Assembly: GCA_965240325.2 (NCBI GenBank) | Contig: OZ251247.1 | Coordinates: forward strand, 186,001 to 250,000 | Direction of reading: 5' to 3' | Source: Rebecca billardiae RCC1528 | Lineage: Eukaryota > Protista > Haptophyta | Length of the DNA stretch: 64,000 nucleotides | In this document: in pieces, positions 17,648-64,000 of the stretch | Layout of the letters: every line of letters begins with the position of its first letter | How positions within the stretch are numbered: the first letter of the stretch is position 1 | The notes under the pieces: generated by a model | What the model was told of the DNA's origin: nothing | Database searches by the model: none | Seen by the model: the letters and a program-made list of their open reading frames with translations, nothing else | Position numbers and translations under genes: made by a program

Positions 17648-19099
17648 ATGGCGACCGGCGACGAGGCGCGCAGCCTCGCCGACCTGCCGCCCGAGCTGAT
17701 CCTGTGCATCGCCCACCACATCGACCGCGCGCGTGACCTCGCCGCCGCCAACGCCACCTCGCGTTTGTTCTTCCGCGGCGTGCTCGCCGGCGAGCGCTCG
17801 CCGGTCGAGCGCGCGCTTCGCGAGCGCGCGCGTGCGCGCGGGCACGAGGGCGCGCTGCCGGCATCGCTGCCCTCGGGCGTGCGCAGTTGGACGGAGGAGC
17901 TGTTCCTGCGCGAGTGCGTGCTCGAGCTCGTGCACGCGCACTCGCCTCCGGTCGCGGCCGGCAACGGCGTCAGCGCGTTTGTGGACGCGGAGGGCGGGCT
18001 GCACACGTGCGGCGAGGAGGAGGTGCGGGACGAGGACGAGCCGACGGGCGAGTGTCGAGCACACGCGGCTACTGGCCAGTCGGGCGTGCTGGAAGTGTGC
18101 GTGCCGACGCGCGTCGCCTCGCTCACCGCGGTGCGCGTGGTTGCGGTGGCCGCTGGTGACTCCCACCTGCTCGCGCTGAGCGAGGCCGGCGCCGTGTACG
18201 GCTGCGGCCACAACGGGTGCGGCCAGCTCGGGCTGGGGGACGACGACAAGAGGCATTCGTTCATGCTGGTCGACGCCTTGACAGCGGAAATCGCAGTGGC
18301 CATCGCAGCCGGCGCGTTTCACAGCCTCGCGCTCACCGCCGCTGGGTGCGCGTACAGCTGGGGCGACAACGACTTCGGCCAGCTCGGCCACGGCGACGAG
18401 GAGGACCGGTGGAAGCCGGCGCGCATCGAGGCGCTGGACGGCGTGCGTGTCGGCGGGCTGGCGGCTGGGTCTGGTCACACGTTGCTGCTCTCGATTGGCG
18501 GAGCCGTGTACTCGTGCGGCGACGGTAGCCGTGGCTGTCTCGGCCACGGCGACGAGCAGGATCAGCACACGCCAAGGCGCATCGAGGCGCTCGCGGGCGT
18601 GCGCGCCGTGCACGTGAGCGCGGGCTGGGAGCACAGCCTGGTGGTGGGCGCAGACGGGCTGGTCTACTCGTTCGGATACAATTGGGAAGGCCAGCTCGGC
18701 CACGTTGCCCGTGAGTTACTTGCCACGCCCCGACGCATCGAGGCGCTCGCTGATGTGCACGCCGTGCGCGCGTCTGCGGGCTACAACAGCAGTGCGGTGC
18801 TGGGCGCGGACGGCAGCGTGCACACGTTCGGGAGCAACAGCAACGGCGTGCTCGGGCACGAGGTGGGGACGGACATCGATCAGCCCACGCGCGTGGCTGC
18901 CCTCGCCCACGCGCGCGTGGTGCACTGTGCCATTCGCAGCTTCCACTCGCTGTTTGTGAGTGCGGACGGCCGCGTGTACGCGTGCGGCAAGCGCTCGGCT
19001 GCGCTCGGCCTCGGCACGAGCAAGGCCGAGCGAGACGAGCCCACCCGGCGTACTGGTACGCCTACGCACGTCTCGACGGCGTGGCGTGCGCTTGCCTAG
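17648..19099 (+). CDS. F-box + 7x RCC1-repeat protein, copy A (intronless)
   Basis: F-box-like LADLPPELILCIAHHI...DLAAANATSRLF, then seven RCC1 blades (VAAGxxHLLAL...VYGCGxNxxGQLG). ATG in the family leader context GCGCGGATCGGCGAGATG. Confidence 0.9.
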   Translation: MATGDEARSLADLPPELILCIAHHIDRARDLAAANATSRLFFRGVLAGERSPVERALRERARARGHEGALPASLPSGVRSWTEELFLRECVLELVHAHSPPVAAGNGVSAFVDAEGGLHTCGEEEVRDEDEPTGECRAHAATGQSGVLEVCVPTRVASLTAVRVVAVAAGDSHLLALSEAGAVYGCGHNGCGQLGLGDDDKRHSFMLVDALTAEIAVAIAAGAFHSLALTAAGCAYSWGDNDFGQLGHGDEEDRWKPARIEALDGVRVGGLAAGSGHTLLLSIGGAVYSCGDGSRGCLGHGDEQDQHTPRRIEALAGVRAVHVSAGWEHSLVVGADGLVYSFGYNWEGQLGHVARELLATPRRIEALADVHAVRASAGYNSSAVLGADGSVHTFGSNSNGVLGHEVGTDIDQPTRVAALAHARVVHCAIRSFHSLFVSADGRVYACGKRSAALGLGTSKAERDEPTRRTGTPTHVSTAWRALA

Positions 19100-19225
19100 C
19101 GCGCACGGACTAGTTGGCGCTGTCGAGGGCCGACTATGCTCCGTCGCCGGGGGCGCGTGGTCGGATGGCGGCGCAGATTGTCGTCGGACAGCTCAGACGC
19201 AGCCCGCGCAGCCGCTGCACGATGA

Positions 19226-20956
19226 TAGGGGGGCCAAACCGCCCATTTGAAAAAGAAAATCAAAGCCGCGGCGCATTTTCGCTCCACCCTCGGCCTTTTG
19301 GGGTGGCGCGGAGCCTTTTTCTCGGACCTCGCTCGAAAATCGAGCTCCGACGCCTTCGGGCGCTCAGAGCTCGGTTTCGCTCGAGCACGAGCGGCCGGAG
19401 GCAGTGGACCGCCGCGCGCTCGCGTCCCATGAGACGCCGAGATGGTCTCGGGCGCGCGCGCGCGTGACGCTGGTGGGCGCTTCTGACCCTTGCTTTTGCG
19501 CCACCAGCGGCTCACCACCCGGTTCTTGGCCACCTCGCGCCGTGCGCGGCGCGCGTCGGCCGGATTGCATTGTCGCGCTGCGTACGCCCGTCACGCTACC
19601 GCTCCTTGTGGCTCAAGATCAACTCGCCCCGGCGAGATCGATACTCGCCCCAAGTGTGCGTGTGTATCCGTGGATGCCCAGCTCGCCTAACCTGCCCTGC
19701 TGCGCCGGAATCGCCGTCAGCAGACCGGCGCGAGCTCGCGCACAACACCTCCACGGAGCCCGCAACTGTCATGTTCCGCTCGTAGGGCCCGTGTTTGCAC
19801 CTGCCGTGGCACTTGCGATGGTCAGCACGTTGGGTATGGGTCACACGTGCCCCCAGATGGCGTCGGGGCGCCTCCCATTCGCCTCTCAGGACGTCGCGGA
19901 CGTGCTCGCAGGCAGCGGATGGCTCATTCGACAGGTCCGACGTGCACTCGACCGTGCCTGCAAGCGCGCCCCTGTGACGCGCATGCCTGCAGAAGCAGAT
20001 GCAGATGGGCCCCCATGCACCCTGGTGCGCCCAAGACCGGCGGGAGCGTCAGAGACCGTCGCAATCTTGACACCTTGCACACGCCGGCGCTTGCCGTTGG
20101 GCCCCGCGCAGCCAGCCAGGAGCACCAAACAGCGCCGGATCAGCCTCTGTAGGCCGAATATCCGCCCCAAAGCCCAGAAATAGCGCGGAACAGGGTAGGG
20201 CGTACCTATATGGACCGATCCTATGCAGCCTGGTTTGGTGCAGAGACGCCAGCCACCACCTGGAGCAGGCGTTTGCTGCCGAATCGCATGCTCGGCACTG
20301 TGCCGCACTGCGACGACGACAGATTTGACCTGCCTCGTAGGTCTCGGCCAGGGAGCGGTGACGGTTGGCTCGAGTGACTTTAAACCTTGACTATGACCGA
20401 GAGTACTCCCGGGCTGAGGACATGGGGCCGGTGCTTTGAGTCCATCATGTCTGCAATACGCCGTACGCATGGCCGTATACACAGTAGTCTGAAAACGTAT
20501 CTCGCAGCTCGAGATCCGACGAGACTGTATTCATCAGCATGGCGGCTATATACACGGTGGGTATGTAACGACCAGTGGCTTCCGGGAAACTACGTGTTTG
20601 ACAGCCTGCCAGTACACAGCCTATATCGCATGTTGGGACCTGCTGCTGCTGGGGACTCAGAACAATCTTGCTGAGATGCTCTATCAAAGTGAGGTCGACA
20701 TGGTCTATATGTCACATATATGACATATAAGACGGCCGTTACATGCCGTTTCCAATAAGTTCAGGCTCATAGTCTAATAAGTAAATATGCTAGCCGTTAC
20801 GCCCTATATTCAGGGTATGTGCACCTGATATTTTTACTTGGCTGGCCCAGACCCCTCCAGAGGGCAAATGATCCAGCCCGAAATCAGCGCTAAACACTCG
20901 CTAGGACCAGCGCTCGTAGCCGTCAGTCACGTCACAGTGCCACTTTGGCCCCCCTA
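19226..20956. mobile_element. Non-autonomous DNA transposon (1.73 kb) with 13-bp terminal inverted repeats
   Basis: TAGGGGGGCCAAA (19226-19238) and TTTGGCCCCCCTA (20944-20956); lower-GC interior with no transposase. TSD is ambiguous: TA, or degenerate cacgatga/gtcgatga. Confidence 0.6.
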
Positions 20957-21316: not shown

Positions 21317-21846
21317 ATGGCGGCCACCGACGAGTTAGCCAACGCACCCGATCACCGACGCGCGCGCTCGTCGACCTGCCGTCAGAGGTGCTCGACCGCA
21401 TCATCTCGCTCCTGCTGCCGCGCGACCTCGCCAGCCTGGGCTCCACCGCGCGCCTCTTCCGCGCCGCGCCGCCCGGCGGGTGCTCGCCAGCCGAGCGCGC
21501 GCTGCGCGAGCGCGCGGACGCGCGCCGGCACGAGCGGCTACTGCCGGCGTCGCTGCCCTCCGACCGGTGCGCACGTGGACGGAGGAGCTGCTCGTGCGCG
21601 GGCGCGTACTCGAGCTCGCGAGTGCGCATGCCTCCCCAGTCTCGGCCGGCGGGGGCTTTAGCGCGCGTGTGGACGCGGAGGGTGGGCTGCACACGTGCGG
21701 CGAGGAGGCGGTGCGGGGCGCGAACGGGCTGATTAGCTGTAGCAAGGGTGGCCACCCTTGGCTGTAGTATCGAGCGCACGTGGCTACTACAGCCGCTTGA
21801 GTCTGTGTAGCCACGCCGGAACGAGTGCGGCCAGCTTGGGGCTGGA
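21317..21846 (+). pseudogene. Truncated, frameshifted F-box/RCC1 copy B
   Basis: ATGGCGGCCACCGACGAG start, F-box (LVDLPSEVLDRIISLL) and blade 1 with indels, ending in a GQLGL remnant just before copy C. Confidence 0.85.
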
Positions 21847-21856
21847 GGCCCGAGCG

Positions 21857-23368
21857 ATGGCATCCGACGACGGCGACGCGCACTCGGGAGCCAAGCGGCT
21901 GACCGACCTGCCGCCCGAGCTGATCCAGCGCATCGTCGGCCACCTCCACGGCGCGTGTGACATCGCCAGCGTGAATGCCACCGCGCGCCTCTTCCACGCC
22001 GCGCCGCCCGGTGAGCGCTCGCCGGTCGAGCACGCGCTGCGCGAGCGCGCGGACGCGCGCGGGCACGAGCGGCTACTGCCGGCGTCGCTGCCCTCCGACG
22101 TGCGCACGTGGACGGAGGAGCTGCTCGTGCGCGAGCGCTTACTCGAGTTCGCGGGCGCGCATGCGTCGCCGGTCTCGGCAAGCGGGGGCTTCAGCGCGTT
22201 CGTGGACGCGGAGGGCGGGCTGCACACGTGTGGTGAGGAGATGGTGGAGGACGAGACTGAGGAGGAGGAGGAGGAGGAGGAGGGCGTGCCAACTGACGGA
22301 GAGCCGACGGGCGCGAGTCAGCCGCTGGTGGCCATGGGCCAGTGCGAGGCGTGGCCAGTGCACGCTCCGACGCACGTCACCTCCCTCAGCGGTGTGCGCG
22401 TGGTCGCCGTGGCCGCTGGCTGCAGGCACCTGCTCGCGCTGAGCGATGCTGGGACGGTGTACGTGTGCGGCGAGAACGGGTGCGGCCAGCTCGGGCTGGG
22501 GGACGAGAAGGAGCGGAGCTCGTTTGCGCCGGTGGAAGCCTTGCGGCACGCAGCCATCGTGGGCATCGCGGCGGGCACGGCCCACAGCCTCGCGCTCAGC
22601 GCCGCCGGGTGCGCGTACAGCTGGGGCCACAACGGCTACGGCGAGCTCGGCCACGGCAACAGGGATGACCGGCGGGAGCCGACGCGCATCGAGGCGCTGG
22701 ACGGCGTGCGCGTGGGCGGCGTGGCGGCTGGGCATTCTCACACGCTGCTGCTCTCGGCCAGAGGCCGTGTCTACTCGTGTGGAGTTGGCGACAGTGGCGA
22801 GCTCGGCCACGGCGACACGCAGGATCAGCGCACGCCGAGGCGCATCGAGGCGCTCGCGGGCGTGCGCGCCGTGCACGTGAGCGCGGGCAGGGGCCACAGC
22901 CTGGTGGTGGACGCGGCGGGCGGCGTGCTCTCCTTCGGCTGTGGACGGCATATGAAGCTCGGGCACGGCGACTGGCAGCATCAGCACACGCCGAGGCGCG
23001 TCGAGGCGCTCGCGCGTGTGCGCGCCGTGCGCGCGTGCGCGGGCGTGCACGCCAGCGCGGTGCTGGGCGCGGACGGCAGCGTGCACGCGTTCGGGAGCAA
23101 CCGAGTCGGCCAGCTCGGGCTGGGGCGCGGAGAGGCGGACGTTAAAGCGCCCACGCGCGCGCTCGCCCTCGCCCAGGCGCGCGTGGTGCGCTGTGCCATG
23201 GGCTACCACCACTCGCTGTTTGTTGCTGCGGACGGCGGCGTGTACGCGTGCGGCAAGCGGTCGGCCGCGCTCGGCCTCGGCATGAGCGTGGCCGAGCGAC
23301 ACGAGCCCACCCAGCGGATTGACACGCCCGCGCGCGTCGAGACGGCGTGGCGTGCGCGTGCCTGCTGA
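21857..23368 (+). CDS. F-box + RCC1-repeat protein, copy C
   Basis: MASDDGDAHSGAKRLTDLPPELIQRIV F-box, seven RCC1 blades, poly-Glu insert in blade 1. Confidence 0.9.
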   Translation: MASDDGDAHSGAKRLTDLPPELIQRIVGHLHGACDIASVNATARLFHAAPPGERSPVEHALRERADARGHERLLPASLPSDVRTWTEELLVRERLLEFAGAHASPVSASGGFSAFVDAEGGLHTCGEEMVEDETEEEEEEEEGVPTDGEPTGASQPLVAMGQCEAWPVHAPTHVTSLSGVRVVAVAAGCRHLLALSDAGTVYVCGENGCGQLGLGDEKERSSFAPVEALRHAAIVGIAAGTAHSLALSAAGCAYSWGHNGYGELGHGNRDDRREPTRIEALDGVRVGGVAAGHSHTLLLSARGRVYSCGVGDSGELGHGDTQDQRTPRRIEALAGVRAVHVSAGRGHSLVVDAAGGVLSFGCGRHMKLGHGDWQHQHTPRRVEALARVRAVRACAGVHASAVLGADGSVHAFGSNRVGQLGLGRGEADVKAPTRALALAQARVVRCAMGYHHSLFVAADGGVYACGKRSAALGLGMSVAERHEPTQRIDTPARVETAWRARAC

Positions 23369-23655
23369 TGTCGCGCGCCGTACTGCCGACTGACGCCCCA
23401 CTGGCTCCGTTGCACTAGCGAGTGTCACTCGTCGGGCAGTGGGTACGAGCTGAGTCCGCATACTGATGCCTATTAACTATACGGTATGACTACGTAGTAC
23501 GTAATGATGCTGAATCATACGACGACTACGAGAAGATATCGGTCGAGGCGTTCGCCGGGGTTGCGCCTGCGGGCCGGGGCGTCGGTTGGGGTCTCCGGAC
23601 CCCCCCGGCCCGGACTCCCCGCCGCCGCGCGCAGCAGCGCGCGCGGATCGGCGAG

Positions 23656-25125
23656 ATGGCCACCGACGAGTTGGGCGGCACCGCGCAACCGACGCGCGCG
23701 CTCGGCGACCTGCCGCCAGAGGTGCTCGACCGCATCATCTCACTCCTGCCGCCGCGCGACCTCGCCAGCCTGAACGCCACCGCGCGCCTCTTCCACGCCG
23801 CGCCGCCCGGCGGGTGCTCGCCGGTCGAGCACGCGCTGCGCGAGCGCGCGCGCGCGCGCGGGCACGAGCGCGCGCTGCCGGCGACGCTGCCCTCCGACGC
23901 GGGCATGTGGACGGGGGAATTGTTCATGCGCGAGCGGGTCCTCGAGCTCGCATGTGCGCATGCACCACCCGTGGCGGCAGGCTCGGGCTTCAGCGCGTTT
24001 GTGGACGCGGAGGGCGGGCTGCACACGTGCGGCGAGCAGCCGGTGCTGGACGCGGACTGGCGGCCGACGGGCGAGTGGCGAGCGCACATCGCCATTGGCC
24101 ACTCGGGCGTGCGTGTAGTGCGCGTGCCGATGCACGTCACCTCCCTCAGCGGTGTGCGCGTGCGCTCTGTGGCCGCTGGCCCTCGCCACCTGCTCGCGCT
24201 CAGCGATGCCGGCGCCGTGTACGGCTGCGGCGACAACGAGCACGGCCAGCTCGGGCTGGGGGACAAGGAGGGGCGGCGCGAGTTTGAGCCGATCGTGGCG
24301 TTCGCTGGCGCCGTGGTGGTGGGCATCGCCGCTGGCCTCGTTCACAGCCTCGCGCTCACCGCCGCTGGGTGCGCGTACAGCTGGGGCCTCAACCACTGCG
24401 GCCAGCTCGGCCACGGCGACACGGAGGACCGGTGGGAGCCGACGCACATCGAGGCGCTGGACGGCGTGCGTGTCGGCGGCGTTGCAGCTGGGGGTTATCA
24501 CACGCTACTGCTCTCGGTGCAGGGCGCCGTCTACTCGTGCGGTTGGGGCTCGTCTGGCCGTCTCGGCCACGGCGACCAGGAGGATCAGCGCACGCCGAGG
24601 CGCATCGAGGCGCTTGCGGGCGTGCGCGCCGTGCACGTGAGCGCGGGCTACGCGCACAGCCTGGTGGTGGACAGCGAGGGGGGCGTGCACTCGTTTGGGG
24701 ATGGTCAGGATGGCCAGCTCGGCCACGGAGACGAGCACGAGCAGCTCACGCCGAGGCGCGTCGAGGCGCTCGCTGGTGTGCGCGCCGTGAGCGCGTCTGC
24801 GGGCTCCTCCAGCAGCGCGGTGCTGGGCGCGGACGGCAGCGTGCACACGTTCGGGGACAACACGCATGGGCAGCTCGGGCGGCGCGGGAAAGCGGCTCCC
24901 AAGACCCCCGCACGAGTGGGCCTGCTCGCCCACGCGCGTGTGGTGCGCTGTGCCATGGGCCGCTTCCACTCGCTGTTTGTGACAGCGGACGGCAGCGTGC
25001 ACGCGTGCGGCGGGCGGTCGGCTGCGCTCGGCCTCGGCATGAGCGTGACCGAGCAAGACGAGCCCACCCAGCGGATTGACACGCCCGCGCGCGTCGAGGC
25101 GGCGTGGCGTGCGCTTGCCGGCTGA
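23656..25125 (+). CDS. F-box + RCC1-repeat protein, copy D
   Basis: MATDELGGTAQPTRALGDLPPEVLDRIISLL followed by seven RCC1 blades. Confidence 0.92.
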   Translation: MATDELGGTAQPTRALGDLPPEVLDRIISLLPPRDLASLNATARLFHAAPPGGCSPVEHALRERARARGHERALPATLPSDAGMWTGELFMRERVLELACAHAPPVAAGSGFSAFVDAEGGLHTCGEQPVLDADWRPTGEWRAHIAIGHSGVRVVRVPMHVTSLSGVRVRSVAAGPRHLLALSDAGAVYGCGDNEHGQLGLGDKEGRREFEPIVAFAGAVVVGIAAGLVHSLALTAAGCAYSWGLNHCGQLGHGDTEDRWEPTHIEALDGVRVGGVAAGGYHTLLLSVQGAVYSCGWGSSGRLGHGDQEDQRTPRRIEALAGVRAVHVSAGYAHSLVVDSEGGVHSFGDGQDGQLGHGDEHEQLTPRRVEALAGVRAVSASAGSSSSAVLGADGSVHTFGDNTHGQLGRRGKAAPKTPARVGLLAHARVVRCAMGRFHSLFVTADGSVHACGGRSAALGLGMSVTEQDEPTQRIDTPARVEAAWRALAG

Positions 25126-26263
25126 TGTCGCGCGCCTCTGCCGACTGACGCCCCACTGGCTCAGTTGCACTGGCGAGTGTCACTCGTCGGGCGGTGGGTA
25201 CGAGCTGAGTCCGCATACTGCCTAATGACTGCTATGCGGACGAGAACATCGTCAGGCAACGTCAGGCGTGTTCGCGTGTTCAATGCTCGCGGTGTTGGGG
25301 TTGCTGCGGAAATCCGGAACGCGGGCCGGGTGAGGGTCCGGCCTGGGCAGGATGACCTGCTCAGGCTGGTTGGGGTCTCCCCAGACTTGGGAGTGAGTGC
25401 ACGGTGCACTGGCACTCGGAGTGAGTGCACTCGGTGCACTCACTCCCGGACTCGCACGCACTCACTCGTCGGCGGCCCCCCGCCATCCGGACTCTGCACG
25501 CACTCACTTGGTGGCTACCACCCTGTCGCACGCACTCACTCCATGAGGAGTGAGTGCGGCGCCGCCCCGCGCCGCGGGCCGCGCCGCCGGCGCCGCGCGG
25601 CGCCGGCGCCGGCGCGGGGCCGGCGCGGGCCCGGCGCACGGGGTCGGCGCGGCGGCGCGCGTTCTGCCGCTGTCAGGGAACGCGTCTCGAGGCTTGACGG
25701 TCGCGAGGTCGGTCGACGGCTTCGGCTCTTGTTTGCGGTGGTGAGCTCAGCGTGTTTTGTGTGATCGGCTCATGTTTCGTTCATTTCTAAGAAGCATCTG
25801 GAATGCTTCGAGATGTCGCCGCCAGGTCGCCGCCAGCCATGCTGTCCTGCTGTATTTTAGGATGAGGTTCAGGTCGATTTTGGAGGATTTTGTGCGAGCG
25901 CCGCCGCAGCGGTCGCGCCGCCACTGTGTGACTGCGAGTAAAATGTTGGATTGGAAATTGGAAATCACTGTAGATTGGCGATTCCTTTGACCCCCCCCTC
26001 AATCCAATATGCGCTCGTCTGTGAGGACTAAGCTTGGATTATGAGTGATTTTGGGCTTGGTATTGTTTGTGCATCTGTGTGTCAGCATGAGTGAATTGGA
26101 GTCAGTAATGCTGGTTGCCAATGCCAGGATACGGGTCATGTGCTGGGACTTCCGTGTGACGGTTTTGGGTAACCCGAGTCAGTCCTGGGCTTATTTGCAC
26201 CATATGTTCACTCTTTGGCCTTGATTTTGGACCTTGTTATTGGGTCATGCCCTGCCTTGATAG

Positions 26264-29942: not shown

Positions 29943-31469
29943 ATGGCCACCGACGAGATGGCGGTCAACGCAACGCCGACGCGCGCGCTCGTCGACCTGC
30001 CGTCAGAGTTGCTCGACCGCATCATCTCACTCCTGCCGCCGCGCGACCTCACCCGCCTGAACGCTACCGCGCGCGTCTTCCACGCCGCGCCGCCCGGCGG
30101 GCGCTCGGCGGTCGAGCACGCGCTGCGCGAGCGCATGCGCACGCGGGGGCACGAGCGCGCGCTGCCGGCGTCGCTGCCCACGGGCGTGCGCACATGGACG
30201 GAGGAGCTGTTTTCGTGTGAGCGCTTGCTCGAGCTCGCATGCGCGCACGCATCCCCGGTCTCGCCAGGCGCTCAATTCAGCGCGTTTGTGGACGCGGACG
30301 GCGGGCTGCACACGTGCGGCGAGGAGCCGGTGTGGGCCGAGGACACCGGGGAGCCGACGGGCGAGTATCGTGAGCACGTGGCTGCTGGCCATCCGAACAC
30401 GTCGGCGGTGCGCGTGCCGACGCGCGTCGCCTCGCTCACCGCGGTGCGCGTGGTCGCGGTGGCCGCTGGAGACGCCCATCTGCTCGCGCTGAGCGACGCG
30501 GGCGCCGTGTACGGCTGCGGCGAGAACGAGCACGGCCAGGTGGGGCTGGGGGACACGCAGGAGCCACGCGCATTCGTCCCCATCAAAATACCGGCCAATG
30601 CGCCCGTCGTGGGCATCGTGGCCGGCCGCGTTCACAGCCTCGCGCTCAGCGCCGCTGGGTGCGCGTACAGCTGGGGCTACAACAGTGACGGCCAGCTCGG
30701 CCACGGCGACAAGGAGGACCGGTGGGAGCCGACGCGCATCGAGGCGCTTGGCGGCGTGCGCGTGGGCGGGATGACCGCGGGCGGTGTCCACACGCTGCTT
30801 CTCGCTGTGCATGGCGCCGTCTACTCGTGCGGCAGCTCGGACGCCGGCCAGCTCGGCCACGGCGACCAGGAGGAGCAGCCCACGCCGAAGCGCATCGAGG
30901 CGCTCGCGGGCGTGCGCGCCGTGCACGTGAGCGCGGGCTATGTGCACAGCCTGGTGGTGGACAAGGAGGGTGGCGTGCACTCGTTTGGATACACTATCAG
31001 CGGCTGTCTCGGCTACAGGGTCCGCGAAGCCGTGCAGCTATCACCCAGGCCCATTGAGGCCCTTGCGGGCGTGCACGCCGTGCGCGCCAGCTGCGCTCTC
31101 AGCAGCAGCGCGGTGCTGGGCGCGGACGGCAGCGTGTACACGTTCGGGGAAAGCCGGTGCGGCCAGCTGGGGCTGCGGCGCGATCGCAATGCCGTCCAGG
31201 CTCCCACTCGCGTAAGTGCCCTCGCACACGTGCGAGTGGTGCGCTGTGCCATGGGCGACTCACACTCGCTGTTTGTGAGTGCGGACGGCAGCGTGTACGC
31301 GTGCGGCAGGCGGTCGGCTGCGCTCGGCCTCGGCATGAGCGCGGCCGAGCGAGACGAGCCCGCCCGGCGTACTGGTACGCCTACGCACGTCTCGACGGCG
31401 TGGCGTGCGCGCCTATCTGCTGATGCGTGGTTGTGGCCACGCCCCACCGCTCCGGTGCATGACCAGTGA
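29943..31469 (+). CDS. F-box + RCC1-repeat protein, copy E
   Basis: LVDLPSELLDRIISLL F-box, seven blades, C-terminal extension RLSADAWLWPRP. Confidence 0.92.
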   Translation: MATDEMAVNATPTRALVDLPSELLDRIISLLPPRDLTRLNATARVFHAAPPGGRSAVEHALRERMRTRGHERALPASLPTGVRTWTEELFSCERLLELACAHASPVSPGAQFSAFVDADGGLHTCGEEPVWAEDTGEPTGEYREHVAAGHPNTSAVRVPTRVASLTAVRVVAVAAGDAHLLALSDAGAVYGCGENEHGQVGLGDTQEPRAFVPIKIPANAPVVGIVAGRVHSLALSAAGCAYSWGYNSDGQLGHGDKEDRWEPTRIEALGGVRVGGMTAGGVHTLLLAVHGAVYSCGSSDAGQLGHGDQEEQPTPKRIEALAGVRAVHVSAGYVHSLVVDKEGGVHSFGYTISGCLGYRVREAVQLSPRPIEALAGVHAVRASCALSSSAVLGADGSVYTFGESRCGQLGLRRDRNAVQAPTRVSALAHVRVVRCAMGDSHSLFVSADGSVYACGRRSAALGLGMSAAERDEPARRTGTPTHVSTAWRARLSADAWLWPRPTAPVHDQ

Positions 31470-31921: not shown

Positions 31922-33397
31922 ATGGCCACCGACGAGTTGGGCGGCACCGCGCAACCGACGCGCGCGCTCGGCGACCTGCCGCCAGAGGTGCTCGACCGCA
32001 TCATCTCGCTCCTGCCGCCGCGCGACCTTGCCAGCCTGAACGCCACCGCGCGCCTCTTCCACGCCGCGCCGCCCGGCGGCCGCTCGCCGGTCGAGCACGC
32101 GCTGCGCGAGCGTGCGCGCGCGCGCGGGCACGAGCGCGCGCTGCTGGCGACGCTGCCCTCCGACGCGGGCACGTGGACGGGGGAATTATTCGTGCGCGAG
32201 CGCGTCCTCGAGCTCGCATGTGCGCATGCACCACCCGTGGCGGCAGGCCACAACTTCAGCGCGTTTGTGGACGCGGAGGGCGGGCTGCACGCGTGCGGCG
32301 AGCAGCCGGTGGAGGACGCGCACACCCTGCAGCCGACGGGCGAGTGGCGAGCGCACATCGCCATTGGTCACTCGGGCGTGCGTGTAGTGCGCGTGCCGAC
32401 GCGCGTCGCCTCCTGCAGCGGTATGCGTGTGGCAGCGGTGGTCGCTGGCACCCACCACCTGCTCGCGCTCAGCGATGCCGGCGCCGTGTACGGCTGCGGC
32501 TACAACTACCACGGCCAGCTCGGGCTGGGGGACACGGAGGAGCGGCGCGAGTTTGAGCCGATCGTGGCGCTCGCTGGCGCCGTGGTGGTGGGCATCGCGG
32601 CTGGCTACGACCACAGCCTCGCGCTCACCGCCGCTGGGTGTGCGTACAGCTGGGGCGCCAACGACTTCGGCCAGCTCGGCCACGGCGACACAGAGGACCG
32701 GTGGGAGCCGACGCGCATCGAGGCGCTGGACGGTGTGCGCGTGGGTGGTGTGGCGGCGGGTGCTGAGCACACGTTGCTGCTATCTGCGCACGGCGGCGCC
32801 GTGTATTCGTGCGGTTATGGCCAGCTTGGCCGTCTCGGCCACGGTGACGAGCAGGATCAGCACACGCCGAGGCGCATCGAGGCGCTCGCGGGCGTGCGCG
32901 CCGTGCACGTGAGCGCGGGCTACGCGCACAGCCTGGTGGTGGACGCAGACGGGCTGGTCTACTCGTTCGGATCCAATGGGCAAGTCCAACTCGGCCACGG
33001 TTTCCGTGGGCTACTTGCCACGCCCCGGCGCATCGAGGCGCTCGCTGATGTGCGCGCTGTGCGCACGTGCGCTGGCTTCCACTGCAGCGCGGTGGTGTGC
33101 GCGGACGGCAGCGTGCACACGTTTGGGAGCAACGAGGACGGCCAGCTCGGATTGGGGCGCGGAGAGGCGGGCGTCAACGCTCCCACGCGCGCGCTCGCCC
33201 TCACCCAAGCTCGTGTGGTGCGCTGTGCCATGGGCGACTCACACTCGCTGTTTGTGACAGCGGACGGCAGCGTGCACGCGTGCGGCAGGCGGTCGGCTGC
33301 GCTCGGCCTCGGCATGAGCGCGGCCGAGCAAGACGAGCCCACCCAGCGGATTGACACGCCTGTGTGCGTCGAGACGGGGTGGCGTGCGCTTGCCTAG
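31922..33397 (+). CDS. F-box + RCC1-repeat protein, copy F
   Basis: Same N-terminus as D and G; seven blades. Confidence 0.92.
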   Translation: MATDELGGTAQPTRALGDLPPEVLDRIISLLPPRDLASLNATARLFHAAPPGGRSPVEHALRERARARGHERALLATLPSDAGTWTGELFVRERVLELACAHAPPVAAGHNFSAFVDAEGGLHACGEQPVEDAHTLQPTGEWRAHIAIGHSGVRVVRVPTRVASCSGMRVAAVVAGTHHLLALSDAGAVYGCGYNYHGQLGLGDTEERREFEPIVALAGAVVVGIAAGYDHSLALTAAGCAYSWGANDFGQLGHGDTEDRWEPTRIEALDGVRVGGVAAGAEHTLLLSAHGGAVYSCGYGQLGRLGHGDEQDQHTPRRIEALAGVRAVHVSAGYAHSLVVDADGLVYSFGSNGQVQLGHGFRGLLATPRRIEALADVRAVRTCAGFHCSAVVCADGSVHTFGSNEDGQLGLGRGEAGVNAPTRALALTQARVVRCAMGDSHSLFVTADGSVHACGRRSAALGLGMSAAEQDEPTQRIDTPVCVETGWRALA

Positions 33398-33424
33398 CGC
33401 GCACGGACTAGTTGGCGTTGGCGA

Positions 33425-38736: not shown

Positions 38737-38769
<33 letters not shown>

Positions 38770-45643: not shown

Positions 45644-45648
45644 CCTCG

Positions 45649-52099: not shown

Positions 52100-52133
<34 letters not shown>

Positions 52134-56694: not shown

Positions 56695-58188
56695 TCAGCG
56701 GAACGCAGTCCGCAGGGACCCGACCAATGCAGGCGTGGCCACGTGGCTTGGCTCGTCGTCGTCCACAGCCGTGCGGAGGCCGAGGCCGAGCGCGGCTGAG
56801 TGCACTCCACACGCGTACACGCTTCCATCCACCGTCTCAAACAGCGAGTGGCGTATGCCCTTGGCACAGCGCACCACGCGCATGTGCGACAGGGCAGTCA
56901 CGCGTGCAGGCGCCAGATGACCTTCATCCGTGCGCCCAGTGCCCAGCATGGCGGGGAAGTTGCTCCCGAACGTGTGCACGCTGCCGTCCGCGTCCAGCAC
57001 CGCGCTGCAGTCGTTGCCGGAGTACGCGCGCACGGCGCGCACGCCTGCAAGGGCCTTGATGCGCTTGGGCACGGCGCCGGCTGGGCGGTCGCCACGCCCG
57101 GGCTTGCCCATGGCCCCAAAGCCAAACGAGCGCACGCCACCATCCGCGCCCACCACCAGGCTGTGGTCACCGCCCGCGCTCACGTGCACGGCGCGCACGC
57201 CCGCTAGCGCCTCGATGCGCCTCGGCGTGTGCTGATGCTGCGTGTCGCCGTGGCCGAGACGGCCGTCCGAGCCAGTGCCGCACGAGTAGACGGCGCCAGG
57301 CGCAGATACGAACAGCGTGTGGAAACAACCTGCAGCAACGCCACCCAAGCGCACGCCGTCCAGCGCCTCGATGCGCGTCGGCTCCCACCGGTCCTTCGTG
57401 TCGCCGTGGCCGAGCTGGCCGAAGTAGTTGCGGCCCCAGCTGTACGCGCAGCCCGCGGCGGTGAGTGTGAGGCTGTGGTAGTGGCCGGCCGAGATGGCGA
57501 CGACGGGCTCGCTCGCGGGTAGCTCGGTGAGTGCGAACGAGTGCCGCTCCTCCGTGTCCCCCAGCCCCAGCTGGCCACTCAAGTTGTCGCCGCAGCCGTA
57601 CACGGCGCCGGCCTCAGTCAGCGCGAGCAGGTGGCCGCAGCCAGCGGCCACAGCGACCACGCGCACCGCGGAGAGCGAGGGCACGCGCGTGGGCACCACG
57701 ACAGCGGTCGCATCCACGTGTCCAATCGCGGGCGGGGCAACGACCTCGTCCGTCGGCTGCCAGTGCGCGTCCTCCACCGCCTGCTCGCCGCACGTGTGCA
57801 GCCCGCCCTCCGTGTCCACGAACGCGCTGAAGCTGTCGCCGCCGCACGCGATCGGGCTCGCGTGCGCGCACGCCAGCTGGTACACGCACTCCAACTGGAA
57901 GAGCTTATCAGACCACGTGCGCACGCCTGCGGGCAGCTCGGCGGGCAGCGCGCGCTCGTGCCCGCGCGCGCGCGCGCGCGCACGAAGCGCGTGCTCGACC
58001 GGCGAGCGGCCACCGGGCGCGCCGCGGAAGAGGCGCGAGGCGGCGTTCGTGGCGGCGAGATCGCGCGGAGCGTCAAGATGGTGCAGGATGCGCTCGATCA
58101 GCTCCGATGGCAGGCCGGCCAGTGGAGGCTGCGACGGTGAGCTCGCGAGGGCGCGCGCCGCGCCGCTGCTCTGTCGCGTCCGAACCAT
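56695..58188 (-). CDS. F-box + RCC1-repeat protein, copy H
   Basis: First ATG at 58188; LAGLPSELIERILHHL F-box plus seven blades. Confidence 0.9.
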   Translation of the reverse strand: MVRTRQSSGAARALASSPSQPPLAGLPSELIERILHHLDAPRDLAATNAASRLFRGAPGGRSPVEHALRARARARGHERALPAELPAGVRTWSDKLFQLECVYQLACAHASPIACGGDSFSAFVDTEGGLHTCGEQAVEDAHWQPTDEVVAPPAIGHVDATAVVVPTRVPSLSAVRVVAVAAGCGHLLALTEAGAVYGCGDNLSGQLGLGDTEERHSFALTELPASEPVVAISAGHYHSLTLTAAGCAYSWGRNYFGQLGHGDTKDRWEPTRIEALDGVRLGGVAAGCFHTLFVSAPGAVYSCGTGSDGRLGHGDTQHQHTPRRIEALAGVRAVHVSAGGDHSLVVGADGGVRSFGFGAMGKPGRGDRPAGAVPKRIKALAGVRAVRAYSGNDCSAVLDADGSVHTFGSNFPAMLGTGRTDEGHLAPARVTALSHMRVVRCAKGIRHSLFETVDGSVYACGVHSAALGLGLRTAVDDDEPSHVATPALVGSLRTAFR

Positions 58189-58544: not shown

Positions 58545-60071
58545 TCACACCGATGCAGAGTAGGCGGCATGCACGCACGGCAGGTGCGCGATGCGCGTGA
58601 TCGAGTGGAGGACGTCCGGCGGCCCCCCATCCTCGTCGGGCAAGTGGGGCCCGTCGGCGTCGGCGGCGGGGCTCTCGTCCACGCCGAGGCCGAGCGCAGC
58701 CGACCGCTTGCCGCACGAGTACACGCCGCCGTCCGCAGCGACGTACAGCGCGTGGTGCGCACCGAATGCGCAGCTGAGCACACGCGCGTGTGCGAGGGCA
58801 GCCACGCGTGTGGGCTGATCGACGTCCATCTCCGGGGTGTCGAGCCCCAGCTGGCCGTTGCGGTTGTTCCCGAACGTGTGCACGCTGCCGTCCGCGCCCA
58901 GCACAGCGCTGCAGTGGGTGCCAGCGCACGCGCGCGCAGCGGTGACGCCAGCCAGGGCGTCGATGTGCTCGGGCAGAAGCTGCGAGCCGGTGCCATGACG
59001 GCCGAGGCAGCCGTGACTTCCTCCCCCTCCAAACGCGTGCACGCCACCCGCCGCGTCTACCACCAGGCTGTGGTCTTGGCCCGCGCTCACGTGCACGGCG
59101 CGCACGCCGGCCAGCGCCTCGATGCGCCTCGGCGTGTGCTGATTCTGCGTGTCGCCGTGGCCGAGCTGGCCGAACTGTCCCCAGCCGCACGAGTAGACGG
59201 CGCCTTGTGCAGAGAGCAGTAGCGTGTGAGAATACCCAGCTGCCAGCCCGCCCACGCGCAAGCCATCCAGCGCCTCGATGCGCGTCGGCTCCCACCGGTC
59301 CTCCTCGTCGCCGTGGCCGAGCTCGCAGTCCCTGTTGCAGCCCCAGCTGTACGCACAGCCAGCCGCGCTGAGCGCGAGGCTGTGGAAGCCGCCAGCAGCG
59401 ATGCACACGGCGGGCTCACTCACGGGCAGCTTGGCGAGAGCGAACGCTCGCCGCTCCTCCGTGTCGCCCAGCCCGAGCTGGCCGCAGCGGTTGTTGCCGC
59501 AGCCGTACACGGCGCCGGCCTCGCTCAGCGCGAGCAGGTGGTCCCACCCAGCAGCCACCGCGACCACGCGCACATCGCTGAAGGAGGCGACGTGCGTCGG
59601 CACGCGCACAATCGGCGCATCCGAGAGGCCAGTGGCCGCGTGCACTCGAGCCGCCTCGCCCGTCGGTTCCCCGGTGTCCTCGTCCCGCACCTCCTCCTCG
59701 CCGCACGTATGCAGCCCGCCTTCCACGTCCACAAACGCGCTGAAGCCACCGCCGGCAGCTGCCGCGGCGGCGTGTGCGTGAGCCACTGCGAGCACGCCCT
59801 CACGGGCGAAGAGCTCTTCCACCCACGTGTGCACGCCCGCGGGTAGCGTCGCCGGCAGCGCGCGCTCGTGGCTGCGCGTGCGCGTGCGCTTGAGCAGCGC
59901 GCGCTCGACCGCCGAGCGGCCGCCGGGCGCGCCGCGGAAGAGGCGCGAGGTGGCGTTGGCGGCGGCAAGCTCGCACGCGCGATCGAGATGGTCGACGATG
60001 CGCTGGATCAGCTCGGGTGGCAGGTCGGTCAGCCGCTTTGCTCCCGAGTGCGCGTCGTCGTCGGCTGCCAT
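58545..60071 (-). CDS. F-box + RCC1-repeat protein, copy I
   Basis: MAADDDAHSGAKRLTDLPPELIQRIV plus seven blades. Confidence 0.9.
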   Translation of the reverse strand: MAADDDAHSGAKRLTDLPPELIQRIVDHLDRACELAAANATSRLFRGAPGGRSAVERALLKRTRTRSHERALPATLPAGVHTWVEELFAREGVLAVAHAHAAAAAAGGGFSAFVDVEGGLHTCGEEEVRDEDTGEPTGEAARVHAATGLSDAPIVRVPTHVASFSDVRVVAVAAGWDHLLALSEAGAVYGCGNNRCGQLGLGDTEERRAFALAKLPVSEPAVCIAAGGFHSLALSAAGCAYSWGCNRDCELGHGDEEDRWEPTRIEALDGLRVGGLAAGYSHTLLLSAQGAVYSCGWGQFGQLGHGDTQNQHTPRRIEALAGVRAVHVSAGQDHSLVVDAAGGVHAFGGGGSHGCLGRHGTGSQLLPEHIDALAGVTAARACAGTHCSAVLGADGSVHTFGNNRNGQLGLDTPEMDVDQPTRVAALAHARVLSCAFGAHHALYVAADGGVYSCGKRSAALGLGVDESPAADADGPHLPDEDGGPPDVLHSITRIAHLPCVHAAYSASV

Positions 60072-60201
60072 CTCGTTGGAGCCGGCAGGCGCGGTGGCCG
60101 TAAACTGCCCACGGTACAGCAACGATGGCAGCCGTCGCACGAGCCCCCGCGTGGGCATGGCTGCCACTACCACACGTCGCTACTCGCTACGCGCGGTGCT
60201 A

Positions 60202-60440
60202 GTCTACTCGTGCGGCTGGGGCCTCGTCTTCGGCCGTCTCGGCCACGGCTATACGAGCAGTCTCAGCGCACGCCGAGGCGCACAGAGGCGCTCGCGGGTG
60301 TGCGCGCCGTGCACGTGAGCGCGGCGGGCGGCAGGCACAGCCCTGGTCACTGGTGGTGGACGTCAGGGCGTGGATGGAGGGTGGCGACTGGCGTGCACTC
60401 CTTCGGCCGCGGATCGGGCGGTGGGTAGCTCGACCATGGC
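60202..60440 (+). pseudogene. Inverted, decayed RCC1 blade 4-5 fragment
   Basis: GTCTACTCGTGCGGCTGGGGC...GCGCGCCGTGCACGTGAGCGCG...GTGCACTCCTTCGGC aligns to family blades 4-5 with many small insertions. Opposite strand to the flanking copies. Confidence 0.85.
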
Positions 60441-60882: not shown

Positions 60883-62409
60883 TTATTGCTTCAGCAATGT
60901 GGCTGCATGCACGCGAGGCAGGTGCACGATGCGCGTGATCGAGTGGGGGGCGTTCGGCGGCCCCACATCCTCATCGGGCAAGTAGGGCCCGTCATCGTCG
61001 GCGGCGCGGCTCTCGTCCACGCCGAGGCCGAGCGCAGCCGACCGCTTGCCGCACGAGTACACGCAGCCGTCCGCATCGACGTACAGCGCGTGGTGCGCAC
61101 CGAATGCGCAGCTGAGCACGCGCGCGTGTGCGAGGGCAGCCACGCGAGTGGGCTTAACGACGTCCATCCCTGGCGTGTCGAGCCCCAGCTGGCCGTAGCT
61201 GTTGATCCCAAACGTGTACACGCTGCCGTCCGCGCCCAGCACCGCGCTGCTGTAGGAGCCAGCGCACGCGCGCACGATGCGCACAGCGGCGAGGGAGTCG
61301 ATCCGCCTCGGCGTGCGCTACTCGTGTGTGTGTCCGTGGCCGATCACGCCATGCCCACCGCGCCCGAATGAGTACACCGCCCCGTCGCTGTCTACCACCA
61401 GGCTGTGCGCATCGCCCGCGCTCACGTGCACAGCGCGCACGCCAGCAAGCGCCTCGATGCGCCTCGGCATGTGCTGATCCCGCTGGTCGCCGTGGCCGAG
61501 CTGGCCGTAGTAGCCCCAGCCGCACGAGTACACGGCACCGTGCGCAGAGAGCAGTAGCGTGTGCGATTCGCCCGCGGAGATGCCGCCCACGCGCACGCCG
61601 TCCAGCGCCACGATGCGCGCCGGCTCGCACCGGCGCTCCGCGTCGCCGTGGCCGAGCTGGCCGCTGCTGTTGATGCCCCAGCTGTACGCCCAGCCAGCTG
61701 CGGTGAGCGCGACGCTGTGCCACCCACCAGCAGCGATGCACACGGCGGGCTCACTCGCGGGCAGCCTGACGAGAGCAAACGACCGCCGCCCCACCCTGTC
61801 CCCCAGCCCAAGCTGGCCGCAGCGGTTGTTGCCGCAGCCGTACACGGCGCCGGCCTCGCTCAGCGCGAGCAGGTGGTCCCACCCAGCAGCCACCGCGACC
61901 ACGCGCACATCGCTGAAGGAGGCGACGTGCGTCGGCACGCGCACAATCGGCGCATCCGAGAGGCCAGTGGCCGCGTGCACTCGCGCCGCCTCGCCCGTCG
62001 GTTCCCCGGTGTCCTCGTCCAGCACCTGCTCCTGGCCGCACGTGTGCAGCCCGCCCTCCGCGTCCACAAACGCGCTGAAGCCACCGCCGGCAGCTGCGGC
62101 GGCGGCGTGTGCGCGAGCCACTGCGAGCACGCCCTCGCGGGCGAAGAGCTCTTCTACCCACGTGTGCACGCCCGCGGGCAGCGTCCGCGGCAGCGCACGC
62201 TCGTGCCCTCGCGCGCGCGCGCGCTCACGCAGCGCGCGCTCGACGGCCGAGCACCCGCCGGGCGGCGCGGCGTGGAAAAGGCGCGAGGTGGCGTTGGCGG
62301 CGGCAAGCTCGCACGCGCGGTCGAGGTGGTCGACGATGCGCTGGATCAGCTCGGGCGGCAGGTCGGTCAGCCGCTTTGCTCCCGAGTGCGCGTCGTCGCC
62401 GGATGCCAT
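60883..62409 (-). pseudogene. F-box + RCC1 copy J, full length with a single in-frame TAG (61318-61320)
   Basis: ORFs 61318-62409 and 60883-61284 are in the same frame: GHGHTHE*RTPRRI, where paralogs have Q (CAG). Confidence 0.85.
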
Positions 62410-62875
62410 CCCGCTTGGAGCCGGCCCGCCCGGCCGGCGTGGTGGCCGTATTGTAGTACTGTGGCGGTGATGACAGTTGGCGGGCCGGTCAATCTCGCCT
62501 GCCTACAGTCATGATCAGCTGTAGTGTGCGTCTCTTATTCTTAATAGTTACAAACTGTAGTCGGTCTAGCTAACGATGGCAGCCGTCGGCGCCTCTGCGG
62601 GCGTCGCCCCACACTCTGGATCAGTGGATGACTCAGTCTCATGGCCGCGCAGCAATCGCGCATATGCCTCATGATCGCCGACATACTGTCAGTCGATCAG
62701 ACAGTAGTCAGGAAGATGAATGTTTAGTGCAGCTAGTCCTTGCCCAATCCCATGGACGGCGTCCGGGCTGCCGGGCGTCGGCCGTGGCACAGCGTGCTGG
62801 CAGCGTCTGCCTCTGGGCATACGCAGTCAGGAAAGGTGGCTGACAATCGAGGCGCACTGGCACGCGCGCGCGTAC

Positions 62876-64000
62876 TCAGCGCAGCGTGCCTGCAAGGGGC
62901 GGCAGCTGCGCCACGCGCTCCAGCTCCGGCCGCATCTCCTCCGTGCCGTGCACGTCGAGGCCGAGCGCGGCCACCTCCATGCCGCACGCGTACACACTGC
63001 CGTCAGCGGTCACAAACAGCGCGTGGTAGGGGCTCATTGAGCACCCCAGCACGCGCTCACCTGCGAGGGCGTGCACCGGCTCGGGCAGACCAGACTCGTC
63101 GGGCCACCGGCCGAGCTGGCCGGAACCGTCCTCCCCGAACGTGTGCACGCTGCCGTCGGCGCCCAGCACCGCGCTGCTGTCATCACATGCACACGCGCGC
63201 ACCGCACGCACACCCGCCAGCGCCTCGATGCGCCCTGGCAGCAGGCGGCTGTAGGGGGCACCTTGGCCGAGCTGCAACGCGATCCCTGATCCGAACGAGT
63301 ACACCGCCCCCTCGCTGTCCACCACCAGGCTGTGCATGTGGCCAGCGCTCACGTGCACGGCGCACACGCCCCTGAGCTCCTCGATGCGCCTCGGCGTGGG
63401 GTGAGAATGCTGGTCGCCGTGGCCGAGACGGCCAAACTCGCCATGGCCGCACGAGTAGACAGCGCCGTGCGTAGACAGAAGCAGCGTATGCTTCTCGCCA
63501 GCTGCCATCCCGCCCACGCGCACGCCGTCCAGTGCCTCGATGCGCGTCGGCTCACACCGGTCCTCCTCGTCGCCGTGGCCGAGCTGGCCCCAGCTGTTGC
63601 GGCCCCAGCTGTACGCGCGCCCAGCGGCGGTGAGCGCGAGGCTGTGAACCCCGCCAGCAGCGATGCCCACGAGCATTTCGTCGGCCAGCGCGTGCAGACG
63701 GGCGAACGAGCGGCGCACGGCAGTGTCTCCCAGCCCGAGCTGGCCATACCCGTTGCTGCCGCAGCCGTACACGGCGCCGGCCTCGCTCAGCGCGAGCAGG
63801 TGCAAGCTGCCAGCGGCCACCGCGATCACACACACCGCGTTGAGGGAGGTGACGTGCGTCGGCACGCGCGCCACCTGCACGCCCGAATGACCAACAGCCA
63901 TGTGCGCTTGATACGCCCGCCCGTGCTCGTCCCGCACCTCCTCCTCGCCGCACGTGTGCAGCCCGCCCTCCGCGTCCACAAACGCGCTAAAGCAAGCGCC
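62876..64000 (-). CDS. RCC1-repeat protein of the same family, copy K (5' end outside the window)
   Basis: Open frame from the window end through blades 1-7. Confidence 0.88.
   Translation of the reverse strand, partial: GACFSAFVDAEGGLHTCGEEEVRDEHGRAYQAHMAVGHSGVQVARVPTHVTSLNAVCVIAVAAGSLHLLALSEAGAVYGCGSNGYGQLGLGDTAVRRSFARLHALADEMLVGIAAGGVHSLALTAAGRAYSWGRNSWGQLGHGDEEDRCEPTRIEALDGVRVGGMAAGEKHTLLLSTHGAVYSCGHGEFGRLGHGDQHSHPTPRRIEELRGVCAVHVSAGHMHSLVVDSEGAVYSFGSGIALQLGQGAPYSRLLPGRIEALAGVRAVRACACDDSSAVLGADGSVHTFGEDGSGQLGRWPDESGLPEPVHALAGERVLGCSMSPYHALFVTADGSVYACGMEVAALGLDVHGTEEMRPELERVAQLPPLAGTLR

Follow-up and report, generated by a model that had tools for sequence, protein, structure and literature searches.

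Tandem F-box-like/RCC1 propeller genes of a haptophyte-like alga, with hypervariable loops that map to one propeller face

A 64-kb window, the whole stretch of DNA analysed here, carries a tandem gene family that is best explained, with a probability of roughly 0.6, as a birth-and-death family of SCF-type receptors: a conserved F-box-like motif would be joined to a propeller whose face is diversified by selection, and whose segments are shuffled. Purifying selection acts on the propeller scaffold and on the N-terminus. At about 30 codons amino-acid replacement outpaces silent change; almost all of these codons lie in the S1–S2 loops or at the start of the S3–S4 loops. Segments are shuffled among the copies by gene conversion or unequal exchange. 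Fast loop change on a conserved propeller is what one would expect of a diversifying recognition repertoire. The proposed mechanism has four parts. (i) The proteins would serve SKP1-CUL1 (SCF) ubiquitin ligases as interchangeable substrate receptors. (ii) The F-box and linker would dock to SKP1. (iii) From paralogue to paralogue, the variable propeller face would bind another target or another variant of a target. (iv) More speculatively, the targets may be fast-evolving or non-self proteins: viral, transposon or genetic-conflict products.

Ecologically dominant haptophytes such as Emiliania are engaged in arms races with giant viruses. To our knowledge, little is known of the intracellular recognition of intruders in these organisms. 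The family supplies a large set of concrete candidates for ubiquitin-ligase adaptors in which the docking end is conserved and the variable face, rich in Tyr, Trp, Ser and Asp, is under selection. With it, the theme of the fast-evolving F-box receptor, known from nematodes and plants, would reach a third eukaryotic supergroup and a new scaffold. Were the repertoire directed at foreign proteins, a major lineage of marine phytoplankton would possess a new class of innate immune receptor that works inside the cell. Protein engineers may also find the RCC1 propeller of interest, as a natural scaffold for displaying loops.

Organization and turnover of the array

A six-frame motif search and tblastn across the window recovered ten copies (A and C–K) and two relics of a single gene (table 1), the same inventory as in an earlier note on this DNA. 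The coding sequence of every copy is continuous and hence intronless, which the note had also claimed. The copies sit in two arrays, A–G on the forward strand and H–K on the reverse strand. Copies A and C–I are intact open reading frames of 483–515 aa, and copy J is probably a pseudogene. Tandem expansion and pseudogenes, the signature of birth-and-death evolution in nematode and plant F-box repertoires, are both found here: two arrays, the J stop codon and two relics. The genome, probably that of a haptophyte alga, is very GC-rich, and the surroundings of the array are rich in transposons. A search for sequencing runs listed no RNA run; the one run listed, X1, contained only fragments of relatives, 90–95% alike, and gives neither expression nor strain comparison. 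Searches against phage by tblastn returned only distant RCC1 matches, which are irrelevant.

Table 1. Positions of the family members and of the F-box-like and loop features of copy D in the window.
Feature	Position	Strand	Description	Basis
Copy A	17648..19099	+	intact, 483 aa, F-box-like/RCC1	ORF, Pfam
Relic B	21322..21729	+	N-terminal fragment alone, about aa 9-134	tblastn, blastn
Copy C	21857..23368	+	intact, 503 aa	ORF, Pfam
Copy D	23656..25125	+	intact, 489 aa; reference for structure model and residue numbering	ORF, Pfam, AF2
F-box-like motif of D	23704..23799	+	residues 17-48; Leu19-Pro20 invariant	Pfam, profile searches
G-xx-H loop of D, example	24181..24186	+	residues 176-177, S1-S2 loop; M8 posterior >0.95; aligns with UVR8 W/R of GWRHT	
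Other G-xx-H loops of D	23983-23988, 24337-24342, 24493-24498, 24649-24654, 24805-24810, 24961-24966	+		
G-x.xx-G loop of D, example	24544..24555	+	residues 297-300, start of S3-S4 loop; M8 posterior 1.00; aligns with UVR8 W94/D96	
Other G-x.xx-G loops of D	24232-24243, 24388-24399, 24700-24711, 24856-24867	+		
Copy E	29943..31469	+	intact, 508 aa	ORF, Pfam
Copy F	31922..33397	+	intact, 491 aa; mosaic of D-like, A-like and C-like segments	ORF, identical tracts
Copy G	34279..35826	+	intact, 515 aa	ORF
Copy H	56695..58188	-	intact, 497 aa	ORF, Pfam
Copy I	58545..60071	-	intact, 508 aa	ORF, Pfam
Second relic	60202..60324	+	123-nt propeller fragment, opposite orientation to I and J	blastn, 88% to D 24529-24646
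Copy J	60883..62409	-	full length; one in-frame TAG, codon 364 (61318-61320)	
Copy K	62876..64000	-	374 aa of propeller; 5' end lost at window edge	

True SCF receptors might instead have been diversified for endogenous roles: recognition of many cellular substrates, self/non-self recognition in the life cycle or in mating (as in SLF arrays), or service as antidotes in selfish toxin–antidote elements. This is a possible reading, if on the unlikely side. Housekeeping F-box/RCC1 proteins exist, mammalian FBXO24 among them (PMC10932545), F-box genes feature in papers on nematode toxin–antidote elements, and the Emiliania huxleyi homologue P0074 stands alone at its locus. Rapid turnover, pseudogenes and transposon-rich surroundings nevertheless speak more for conflict-type targets than for stable cellular substrates. 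Between endogenous and immune roles, nothing in the data separates the two. The most specific version of the receptor reading, a germline antibody-like SCF repertoire in haptophytes with a CDR-like RCC1 face, shaped by selection and gene conversion and degrading fast-evolving foreign proteins such as those of giant viruses or transposons, is rather unlikely.

Propeller loops and the evidence for their selection

The gene encodes an F-box-like motif at the N-terminus, followed by a helical linker and a propeller of the RCC1 type with seven blades. All six scanned copies matched PF25390 at 240–261 bits (cut-off 150), with a Pfam RCC1/WD40_RLD E-value of about 1e-76, and each contained six stretches matching PF00415. 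An AF2 model of copy D (pLDDT 91.8, pTM 0.90) has seven blades; 28 strands were assigned, four per blade, one being merely a two-residue bridge in DSSP. The closest solved propellers are UVR8 (TM 0.94, rmsd about 2.2 Å) and the HERC2 RLDs (TM 0.84–0.86), at about 32% identity. RCC1 itself is a distant match (E 1e-31, TM 0.73–0.77).

Mean identity at the 32 loop motif positions is 17%, against a protein identity of 61–81% between copies (tblastn, D as query against the others). The loop residues that the earlier note had tabulated blade by blade were reproduced exactly. Selected sites fall in the S1–S2 and S3–S4 loops in 27 of 31 cases; one of 76 sites in the opposite-face loops is selected, and none of 98 in the N-terminus (F-box and linker). 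The variable positions align with UVR8 W233/R234, W285/R286, W337/R338, W94, D96 and D107, residues that belong to the UVR8 dimer interface (PMC8748919). Strand topology and this interface mapping, rather than measured coordinates, support the placement of the two variable loop types on one shared propeller face, as the note had proposed. Tyr is enriched sixfold at loop positions, Trp 3.5-fold, and Asn, Ser, Phe and Asp two- to threefold. A surface rich in Trp, Tyr, His, Asp and Arg had been proposed; His (1.45-fold) and Arg (1.2-fold) are barely enriched. The motif codons are AT-richer than the remainder (GC1 0.54 against 0.77), so that composition runs counter to GC pressure and GC-biased gene conversion is ruled out as the driver. 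In 52 distant homologues (about 40% identity) these same alignment columns are the most variable; adjoining residues are invariant.

Selection was assessed with our own codon likelihood models, using a separate tree for each segment of about 60 codons, fixed inside the segment. Strong constraint (omega about 0.07–0.09) applies to 58–60% of codons. In the partitioned analyses M8 gained 101–112 lnL units over M8a, with a fast class of 9–10% of codons, and M2a gained 108/127 over M1a. Most of this gain is accounted for by a class that is 'hot but neutral' (alpha = beta, about 5), which fits as well as or better than M2a; for this reason the omega of 8–10 from M2a/M8 was not taken at face value. 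The hot-neutral class is in turn outperformed by one whose silent and replacement rates are both free (2dlnL 14.7–23.7), with a beta/alpha of about 3–4, the estimate used here. Silent change in the fast class runs at 2–2.5 times the rate of the remaining codons. In 28 null simulations, 20 of them recombining, 2dlnL reached at most 3.1 without recombination and 8.6 with it; the real data, on the same single tree, gave 23.7, above every simulation. Choosing variable columns and then computing dN/dS is circular; random-effects models and a motif set defined by structure were used instead. The tree-free ratio dN(motif)/dS(rest) is 1.8–7 in 10 pairs, and a conservative same-codon count gives only 1.4–1.6 (p 0.008–0.06). 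Per-site FEL with a free silent rate, underpowered at nine sequences, found eight sites at p<0.05, about chance level. Site models of the kind suggested in the note place dN/dS above 1 at the loops; omega above 1 is confined to the propeller, the putative substrate-binding domain, and the F-box is conserved, under pervasive recombination and with the lower same-codon ratio.

The suggested recombination screen was also run, and the PHI test is significant. Scaffold dS between copies is 0.17–0.53 and DNA is identical only in local tracts of 45–173 nt; the earlier description of a scaffold nearly invariant at the DNA level was overstated. On the evidence of their sequences, the copies are gene-conversion mosaics. 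Several identical tracts start or stop beside variable columns, as at alignment codons 207–222 and 346–371. Such tract ends, together with the PHI result, the good fit and large likelihood share of the hot-neutral class, the raised silent rate of the fast class and the low same-codon ratio, favour a neutral account: the loops would be old and unconstrained, and gene conversion would reset the scaffold, lower its silent divergence and stall at diverged loops, so that the loops merely look faster than silent sites. This account is improbable, given a free-rate beta/alpha of 3–4 with a 2dlnL beyond all null simulations, a skew towards Tyr, Trp, Asn, Phe, Ser and Asp despite strong GC pressure, and the variation of the same positions, beside invariant neighbours, across distant homologues.

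The F-box-like N-terminus

The F-box sequence motif with its Leu-Pro (Pfam PF12937/PF00646) is present. Against a Pfam threshold of 24.3, copy D scores 24.6 bits over its whole length, and its N-terminus scored alone reaches 27.9 bits. The other scanned copies score 15–22.5 bits, leaving five of six under the threshold, and the matches span only profile positions 2–33 of 47. PF12937 is matched (E <= 0.01) by 24 of 26 family N-termini, at best with 6.8e-9, and the L19-P20 dipeptide is invariant across 60 sequences. Of 18 matches in profile searches against the PDB, 16 were F-boxes, bound to Skp1 as in the fold matches. The model of D has helices at residues 21–29 and 33–46, plus linker helices. 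Most of the top fold matches to the N-terminal model are F-box chains in Skp1 complexes (Fbw7, FBXO31, Fbs1 and FBG3), all weak (E 0.5–1, probability <= 0.69); the best are Fbw7–Skp1 complexes (Fbw7 TM 0.50 over 91 columns, E about 0.5). No SKP1 gene was found within the 64-kb window. The note's assignment of the N-terminus as an F-box is supported as an F-box-like motif, by copy D and by the family as a whole; most single copies score under threshold. The copies are likely ubiquitin-ligase adaptors. That the propeller is instead a lone binding module or a GEF-like protein, behind a motif that is only F-box-like, is very unlikely: the sub-threshold scores, partial profile coverage and fold-search E-value point that way, but Pfam, PDB profile and fold searches agree on an F-box, the dipeptide is invariant and the order of F-box, linker and propeller resembles Fbw7.

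Comparison with known systems

Literature searches on the family, on its hypervariability and on F-box/RCC1 proteins brought up no hypervariable family of this type. 'RCC1' in Emiliania papers denotes culture-collection strain numbers. UVR8 (PDB 4D9S, 4DNW) shares the propeller fold, and its interface residues correspond to the variable positions here. A UVR8-type UV-B receptor is ruled out: the Trp triad (three GWRHT motifs) is absent, the homologous 'xx' positions are hypervariable, and no copy has W-R in three blades. The HERC2 RLDs (3KCI, 7Q40/7Q41) also share the fold, but HERC2 has a HECT domain, which the copies lack; the title of entry 7q41 records a DXDKDED peptide motif bound to HERC2 RLD2. 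Fbw7 and beta-TrCP likewise combine an F-box, a helical linker and a propeller that shows one face to the substrate. Their propeller is of the WD40 type, whereas it is RCC1 here, and the fold search links them only weakly (E about 0.5). Mammalian FBXO24 (PMC10932545) has an F-box and RCC1 repeats, and an Atlas feature search lists the FBXO24 cluster with a score of 0.94, a likeness of architecture. FBXO24 itself exists as one conserved gene, its cellular substrates are defined, and it forms no hypervariable repertoire.

The expanded and positively selected families of F-box genes in Caenorhabditis and plants (PMC8120010, PMC8665587, PMC3030570) are alike in their tandem, lineage-specific birth-and-death expansion, their pseudogenes, and their pairing of a conserved F-box with a fast substrate-binding domain. 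They have been proposed to act in defence or in genetic conflict. The parallel drawn in the earlier note, with an RCC1 scaffold as the difference, is upheld by the tandem birth-and-death pattern and by an omega above 1 that is confined to one domain. The binding domain in those families is FTH/FBA, kelch or LRR, and here it is an RCC1 propeller. Unlike in those families, variation in this haptophyte-like alga is restricted to one face, where each blade contributes two short loops.

Two arrays of one gene family

The window is extremely GC-rich (53–88% in 2-kb bins) and contains ten copies (A and C–K) of one gene family, arranged in two convergent arrays. Intact open reading frames (ORFs) of 483–515 amino acids are present in eight of them. 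Copy J has a lone in-frame TAG at codon 364, and copy K is incomplete because the window end cuts the gene. An earlier note had counted ten intronless copies and two relics; the count is borne out by a six-frame motif search, stop-to-stop frames and tblastn, and the coding sequence (CDS) of every copy is uninterrupted. DNA similarity between copies scarcely extends past the CDS: it stops within approximately 20–80 nt, and the flanks, apart from shared bits, are unrelated. About 20 nt directly 5′ of the ATG (…gcgcggatcggcgagATGGC) are common to copies A, D, E, F and G, and C and D match over 80 nt or more 3′ of the CDS (23369–23450 and 25126–25207).

The stretch that separates the arrays carries a copia-type element and a further, different F-box gene. 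After its F-box-like match, the product of this gene continues as Gly/Ala-rich low-complexity sequence and is devoid of RCC1 repeats. A 2.8 kb insert of low GC content (approx. 53%), located between copies D and E and flanked by direct repeats, looks like a young LTR-type element. The segment 48000–54000 reaches 81–88% GC, with long open frames on both strands; a Pfam search of three ORFs from it returned no match.

Features of the arrays and their surroundings (window positions, except the last row)
Feature	Position	Strand	Details
Copies A, C, D, E, F, G	17.6–35.8 kb	+	First array; reference copy D (489 aa) at 23656–25125
Relic, N-terminal fragment (B)	21322–21729		Searches of window DNA
Direct repeats	25671–25991 and 28839–29159		321 bp, 100% identical; flank insert 25992–28838
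737-aa ORF inside repeat-flanked insert	26626–28839	-	Pfam: no match
Different F-box gene, 811-aa ORF	37737–40172	+	PF12937 full-length match, 31.8 bits, residues 95–143
Copia-type polyprotein fragment	43268–45643	-	RVT_2 E 1e-51, SH3_retrovirus
Copies H, I, J, K	56.7–64.0 kb	-	Second array
Relic, inverted	60202–60324		Searches of window DNA
E. huxleyi CCMP1516 member P0074	KB864546.1, L001 10001–11464		Intronless, 1464 nt for 487 aa

Propeller, variable face and N-terminal module

Six RCC1 repeats and a WD40_RLD match (Pfam, E approx. 1e-71 to 1e-77) are found in all six copies scanned. The AF2 model of copy D, built from 60 sequences, has seven four-stranded blades (pLDDT 91.8, pTM 0.90). 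Its closest solved structure is UVR8 (TM 0.94, rmsd approx. 2.2 Å, 32% identity), followed by the RLDs of HERC2 and HERC1. The strands of each repeat occur in the order S1 (..AAG), S2 (H.L.L), S3 (.VY.CG) and S4 (P..V). Because this is an antiparallel meander, the S1–S2 loop (G-xx-H) and the start of the S3–S4 loop (G-x.xx-G) lie on the same face; the S2–S3 and S4–S1′ loops are carried by the opposite one. In HMMER alignments the ‘xx’ of G-xx-H corresponds to UVR8 W233/R234, W285/R286 and W337/R338, the x.xx loop to W94 and D96, and a third small variable patch, GHGD-xx-x, to D107. Exactly those residues provide the interfacial Trp pyramid and salt bridges of the UVR8 dimer (PMC8748919). Codons with an M8 posterior >0.95 (n = 31), referred to here as selected, fall in the S1–S2 or S3–S4 loops in 27 cases, compared with 1/76 opposite-face loop codons, 1/157 strand codons and 0/98 N-terminal codons (Fisher p = 4.6e-12 for face loops versus the rest and 7e-5 for face versus opposite face). 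The proposal that the variable loops share one propeller face is thus supported by strand topology and by homology to UVR8, not by coordinate measurements.

The loop residues tabulated in the earlier note were reproduced exactly. Mean identity at the 32 motif positions is 17%, against 61–81% protein identity between D and the other copies (tblastn). Tyr (6-fold), Trp (3.5-fold), Asn, Ser and Phe (2.3–2.8-fold) and Asp (2-fold) are enriched there, and Ala, Val, Leu, Pro and Thr are depleted. The proposed bias towards Trp, Tyr, His, Asp and Arg therefore holds for Tyr, Trp and Asp, His and Arg being barely enriched.

No protein more than 53% identical was found in a collection of 5.8 billion proteins. 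The best matches are unnamed metagenomic proteins of equal length and E. huxleyi proteins (38–41% identity) annotated ‘E3 ubiquitin ligase’ or ‘F-box domain-containing’; the nearest Atlas clusters belong to Haptophyta. The E. huxleyi member P0074 is solitary at its locus, outside any tandem array. A search with the family-specific N-terminal module brings up 601 cluster representatives (50% identity) at E ≤0.001, of which 161 reach ≤1e-10. Judged from sequence comparison, the variable face is a property of the whole family beyond this array, since G-xx-H and G-x.xx-G are again the most variable propeller columns among 52 such homologues (column entropy 2.9 versus 1.05 bits, p 3e-13; Spearman 0.53) and the consensus lacks a majority residue at exactly these positions.

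The N-terminus had been proposed to be an F-box. Family-level evidence supports this: PF12937 is matched at E ≤0.01 (best 6.8e-9) by 24 of the 26 N-termini compared, which come from window copies and homologues, and Leu19-Pro20 is invariant across the 60-sequence alignment. The curated threshold of 24.3 bits is passed by D only (24.6 bits), the other scanned copies scoring 15–22.5 bits. A search of PDB sequences with the N-terminal profile gave 18 matches, of which 16 fall on the F-boxes of F-box proteins, at marginal E-values (≥0.011); these include FBXO22, FBXO31, FBXW7, cyclin F, MAX2, FBXL2/5 and GID2. The top fold matches of the AF2-modelled N-terminal 97 residues (pLDDT 81) are Fbw7, FBXO31, Fbs1, FBG3 and FBXW11 in Skp1 complexes, although weak (E approx. 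0.5, TM 0.50). The N-terminus is read as a true, if divergent, F-box that precedes a helical linker, as in Fbw7, with putative SKP1 docking.

Recombination, and probable selection at the loops

Recombination among the copies is detected (PHI p ≤0.001, third positions likewise), and a sliding nearest-paralogue scan reveals mosaics. Copy F passes from D-like to A-like to C-like, and copies I and J have a 173-nt identical tract in common and differ elsewhere. Scaffold dS of 0.17–0.53 contradicts the idea of near-invariance at the DNA level; whole-gene dN/dS is approximately 0.6–0.8 (NG86).

Site models were fitted with a purpose-written codon-likelihood implementation (GY94, F3x4). On a single tree, M8 improves on M8a by 101–107 lnL units. 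Partitioned fits, with an independent tree per approximately 60 codons, give gains for M2a over M1a of 108 (9 sequences, 479 codons) and 127 (10 sequences, 370 codons), and for M8 over M8a of 101 or 112; omega is approximately 8–10 for 9–10% of codons under models that assume one silent rate. A neutral third class that is fast, with equal silent and replacement rates (alpha = beta, approx. 5), gives a marginally better fit than M2a does; speed alone therefore accounts for the bulk of the signal. When alpha and beta are freed in the fast class, however, they become 2.1–2.5 and 7.4–8.4 (ratio 3–4), improving on the neutral class by 2dlnL of 14.7 and 23.6. Eight simulated neutral sets on the true tree yield at most 3.1. 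Twenty sets simulated with a tree per segment and analysed on one wrong tree reach 8.6 (7.25 for beta > alpha), whereas the observed sequences, analysed on that one tree, give 23.7 (ratio 3.0). Tree-free checks point the same way. The ratio dN(motif)/dS(rest) over the 32 structurally defined codons is 1.8–7 in ten pairs (bootstrap p<0.0005 in 9/10). Same-codon motif dN/dS in five independent pairs is 1.4–1.6 (p 0.008 and 0.06), a measure that NG86 biases towards 1 at such saturation; per-site FEL is underpowered on these sequences. Replacement thus exceeds silent change at the loops by approximately 1.5 to 4-fold, depending on the model. This excess and the skewed composition, taken in combination, make diversifying selection a better explanation than neutrality by itself, and the purely neutral account, in which old loops sit in a homogenized scaffold, is unlikely. 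GC-biased gene conversion is rejected as the driver: the motif codons are AT-richer (motif versus rest: GC1 0.54 versus 0.77, GC3 0.78 versus 0.87), the reverse of what it or mutational pressure would yield in this genome.

Relation to known systems

The hypervariable F-box/RCC1 array is a real observation. Computation lends reasonable support both to the interpretation as putative SCF receptors and to the selected variable face, and a candidate immune role is an attractive hypothesis. UVR8 possesses a Trp triad that is absent from the window proteins, which are therefore not UVR8 orthologues. Within the literature searched, no description of a hypervariable F-box/RCC1 family was found, in haptophytes or elsewhere. 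Mammalian FBXO24 already combines an F-box with RCC1 repeats in the same layout (PMC10932545). Tandemly expanded, fast-evolving F-box families are described from Caenorhabditis and plants (PMC8120010, PMC8665587, PMC3030570).
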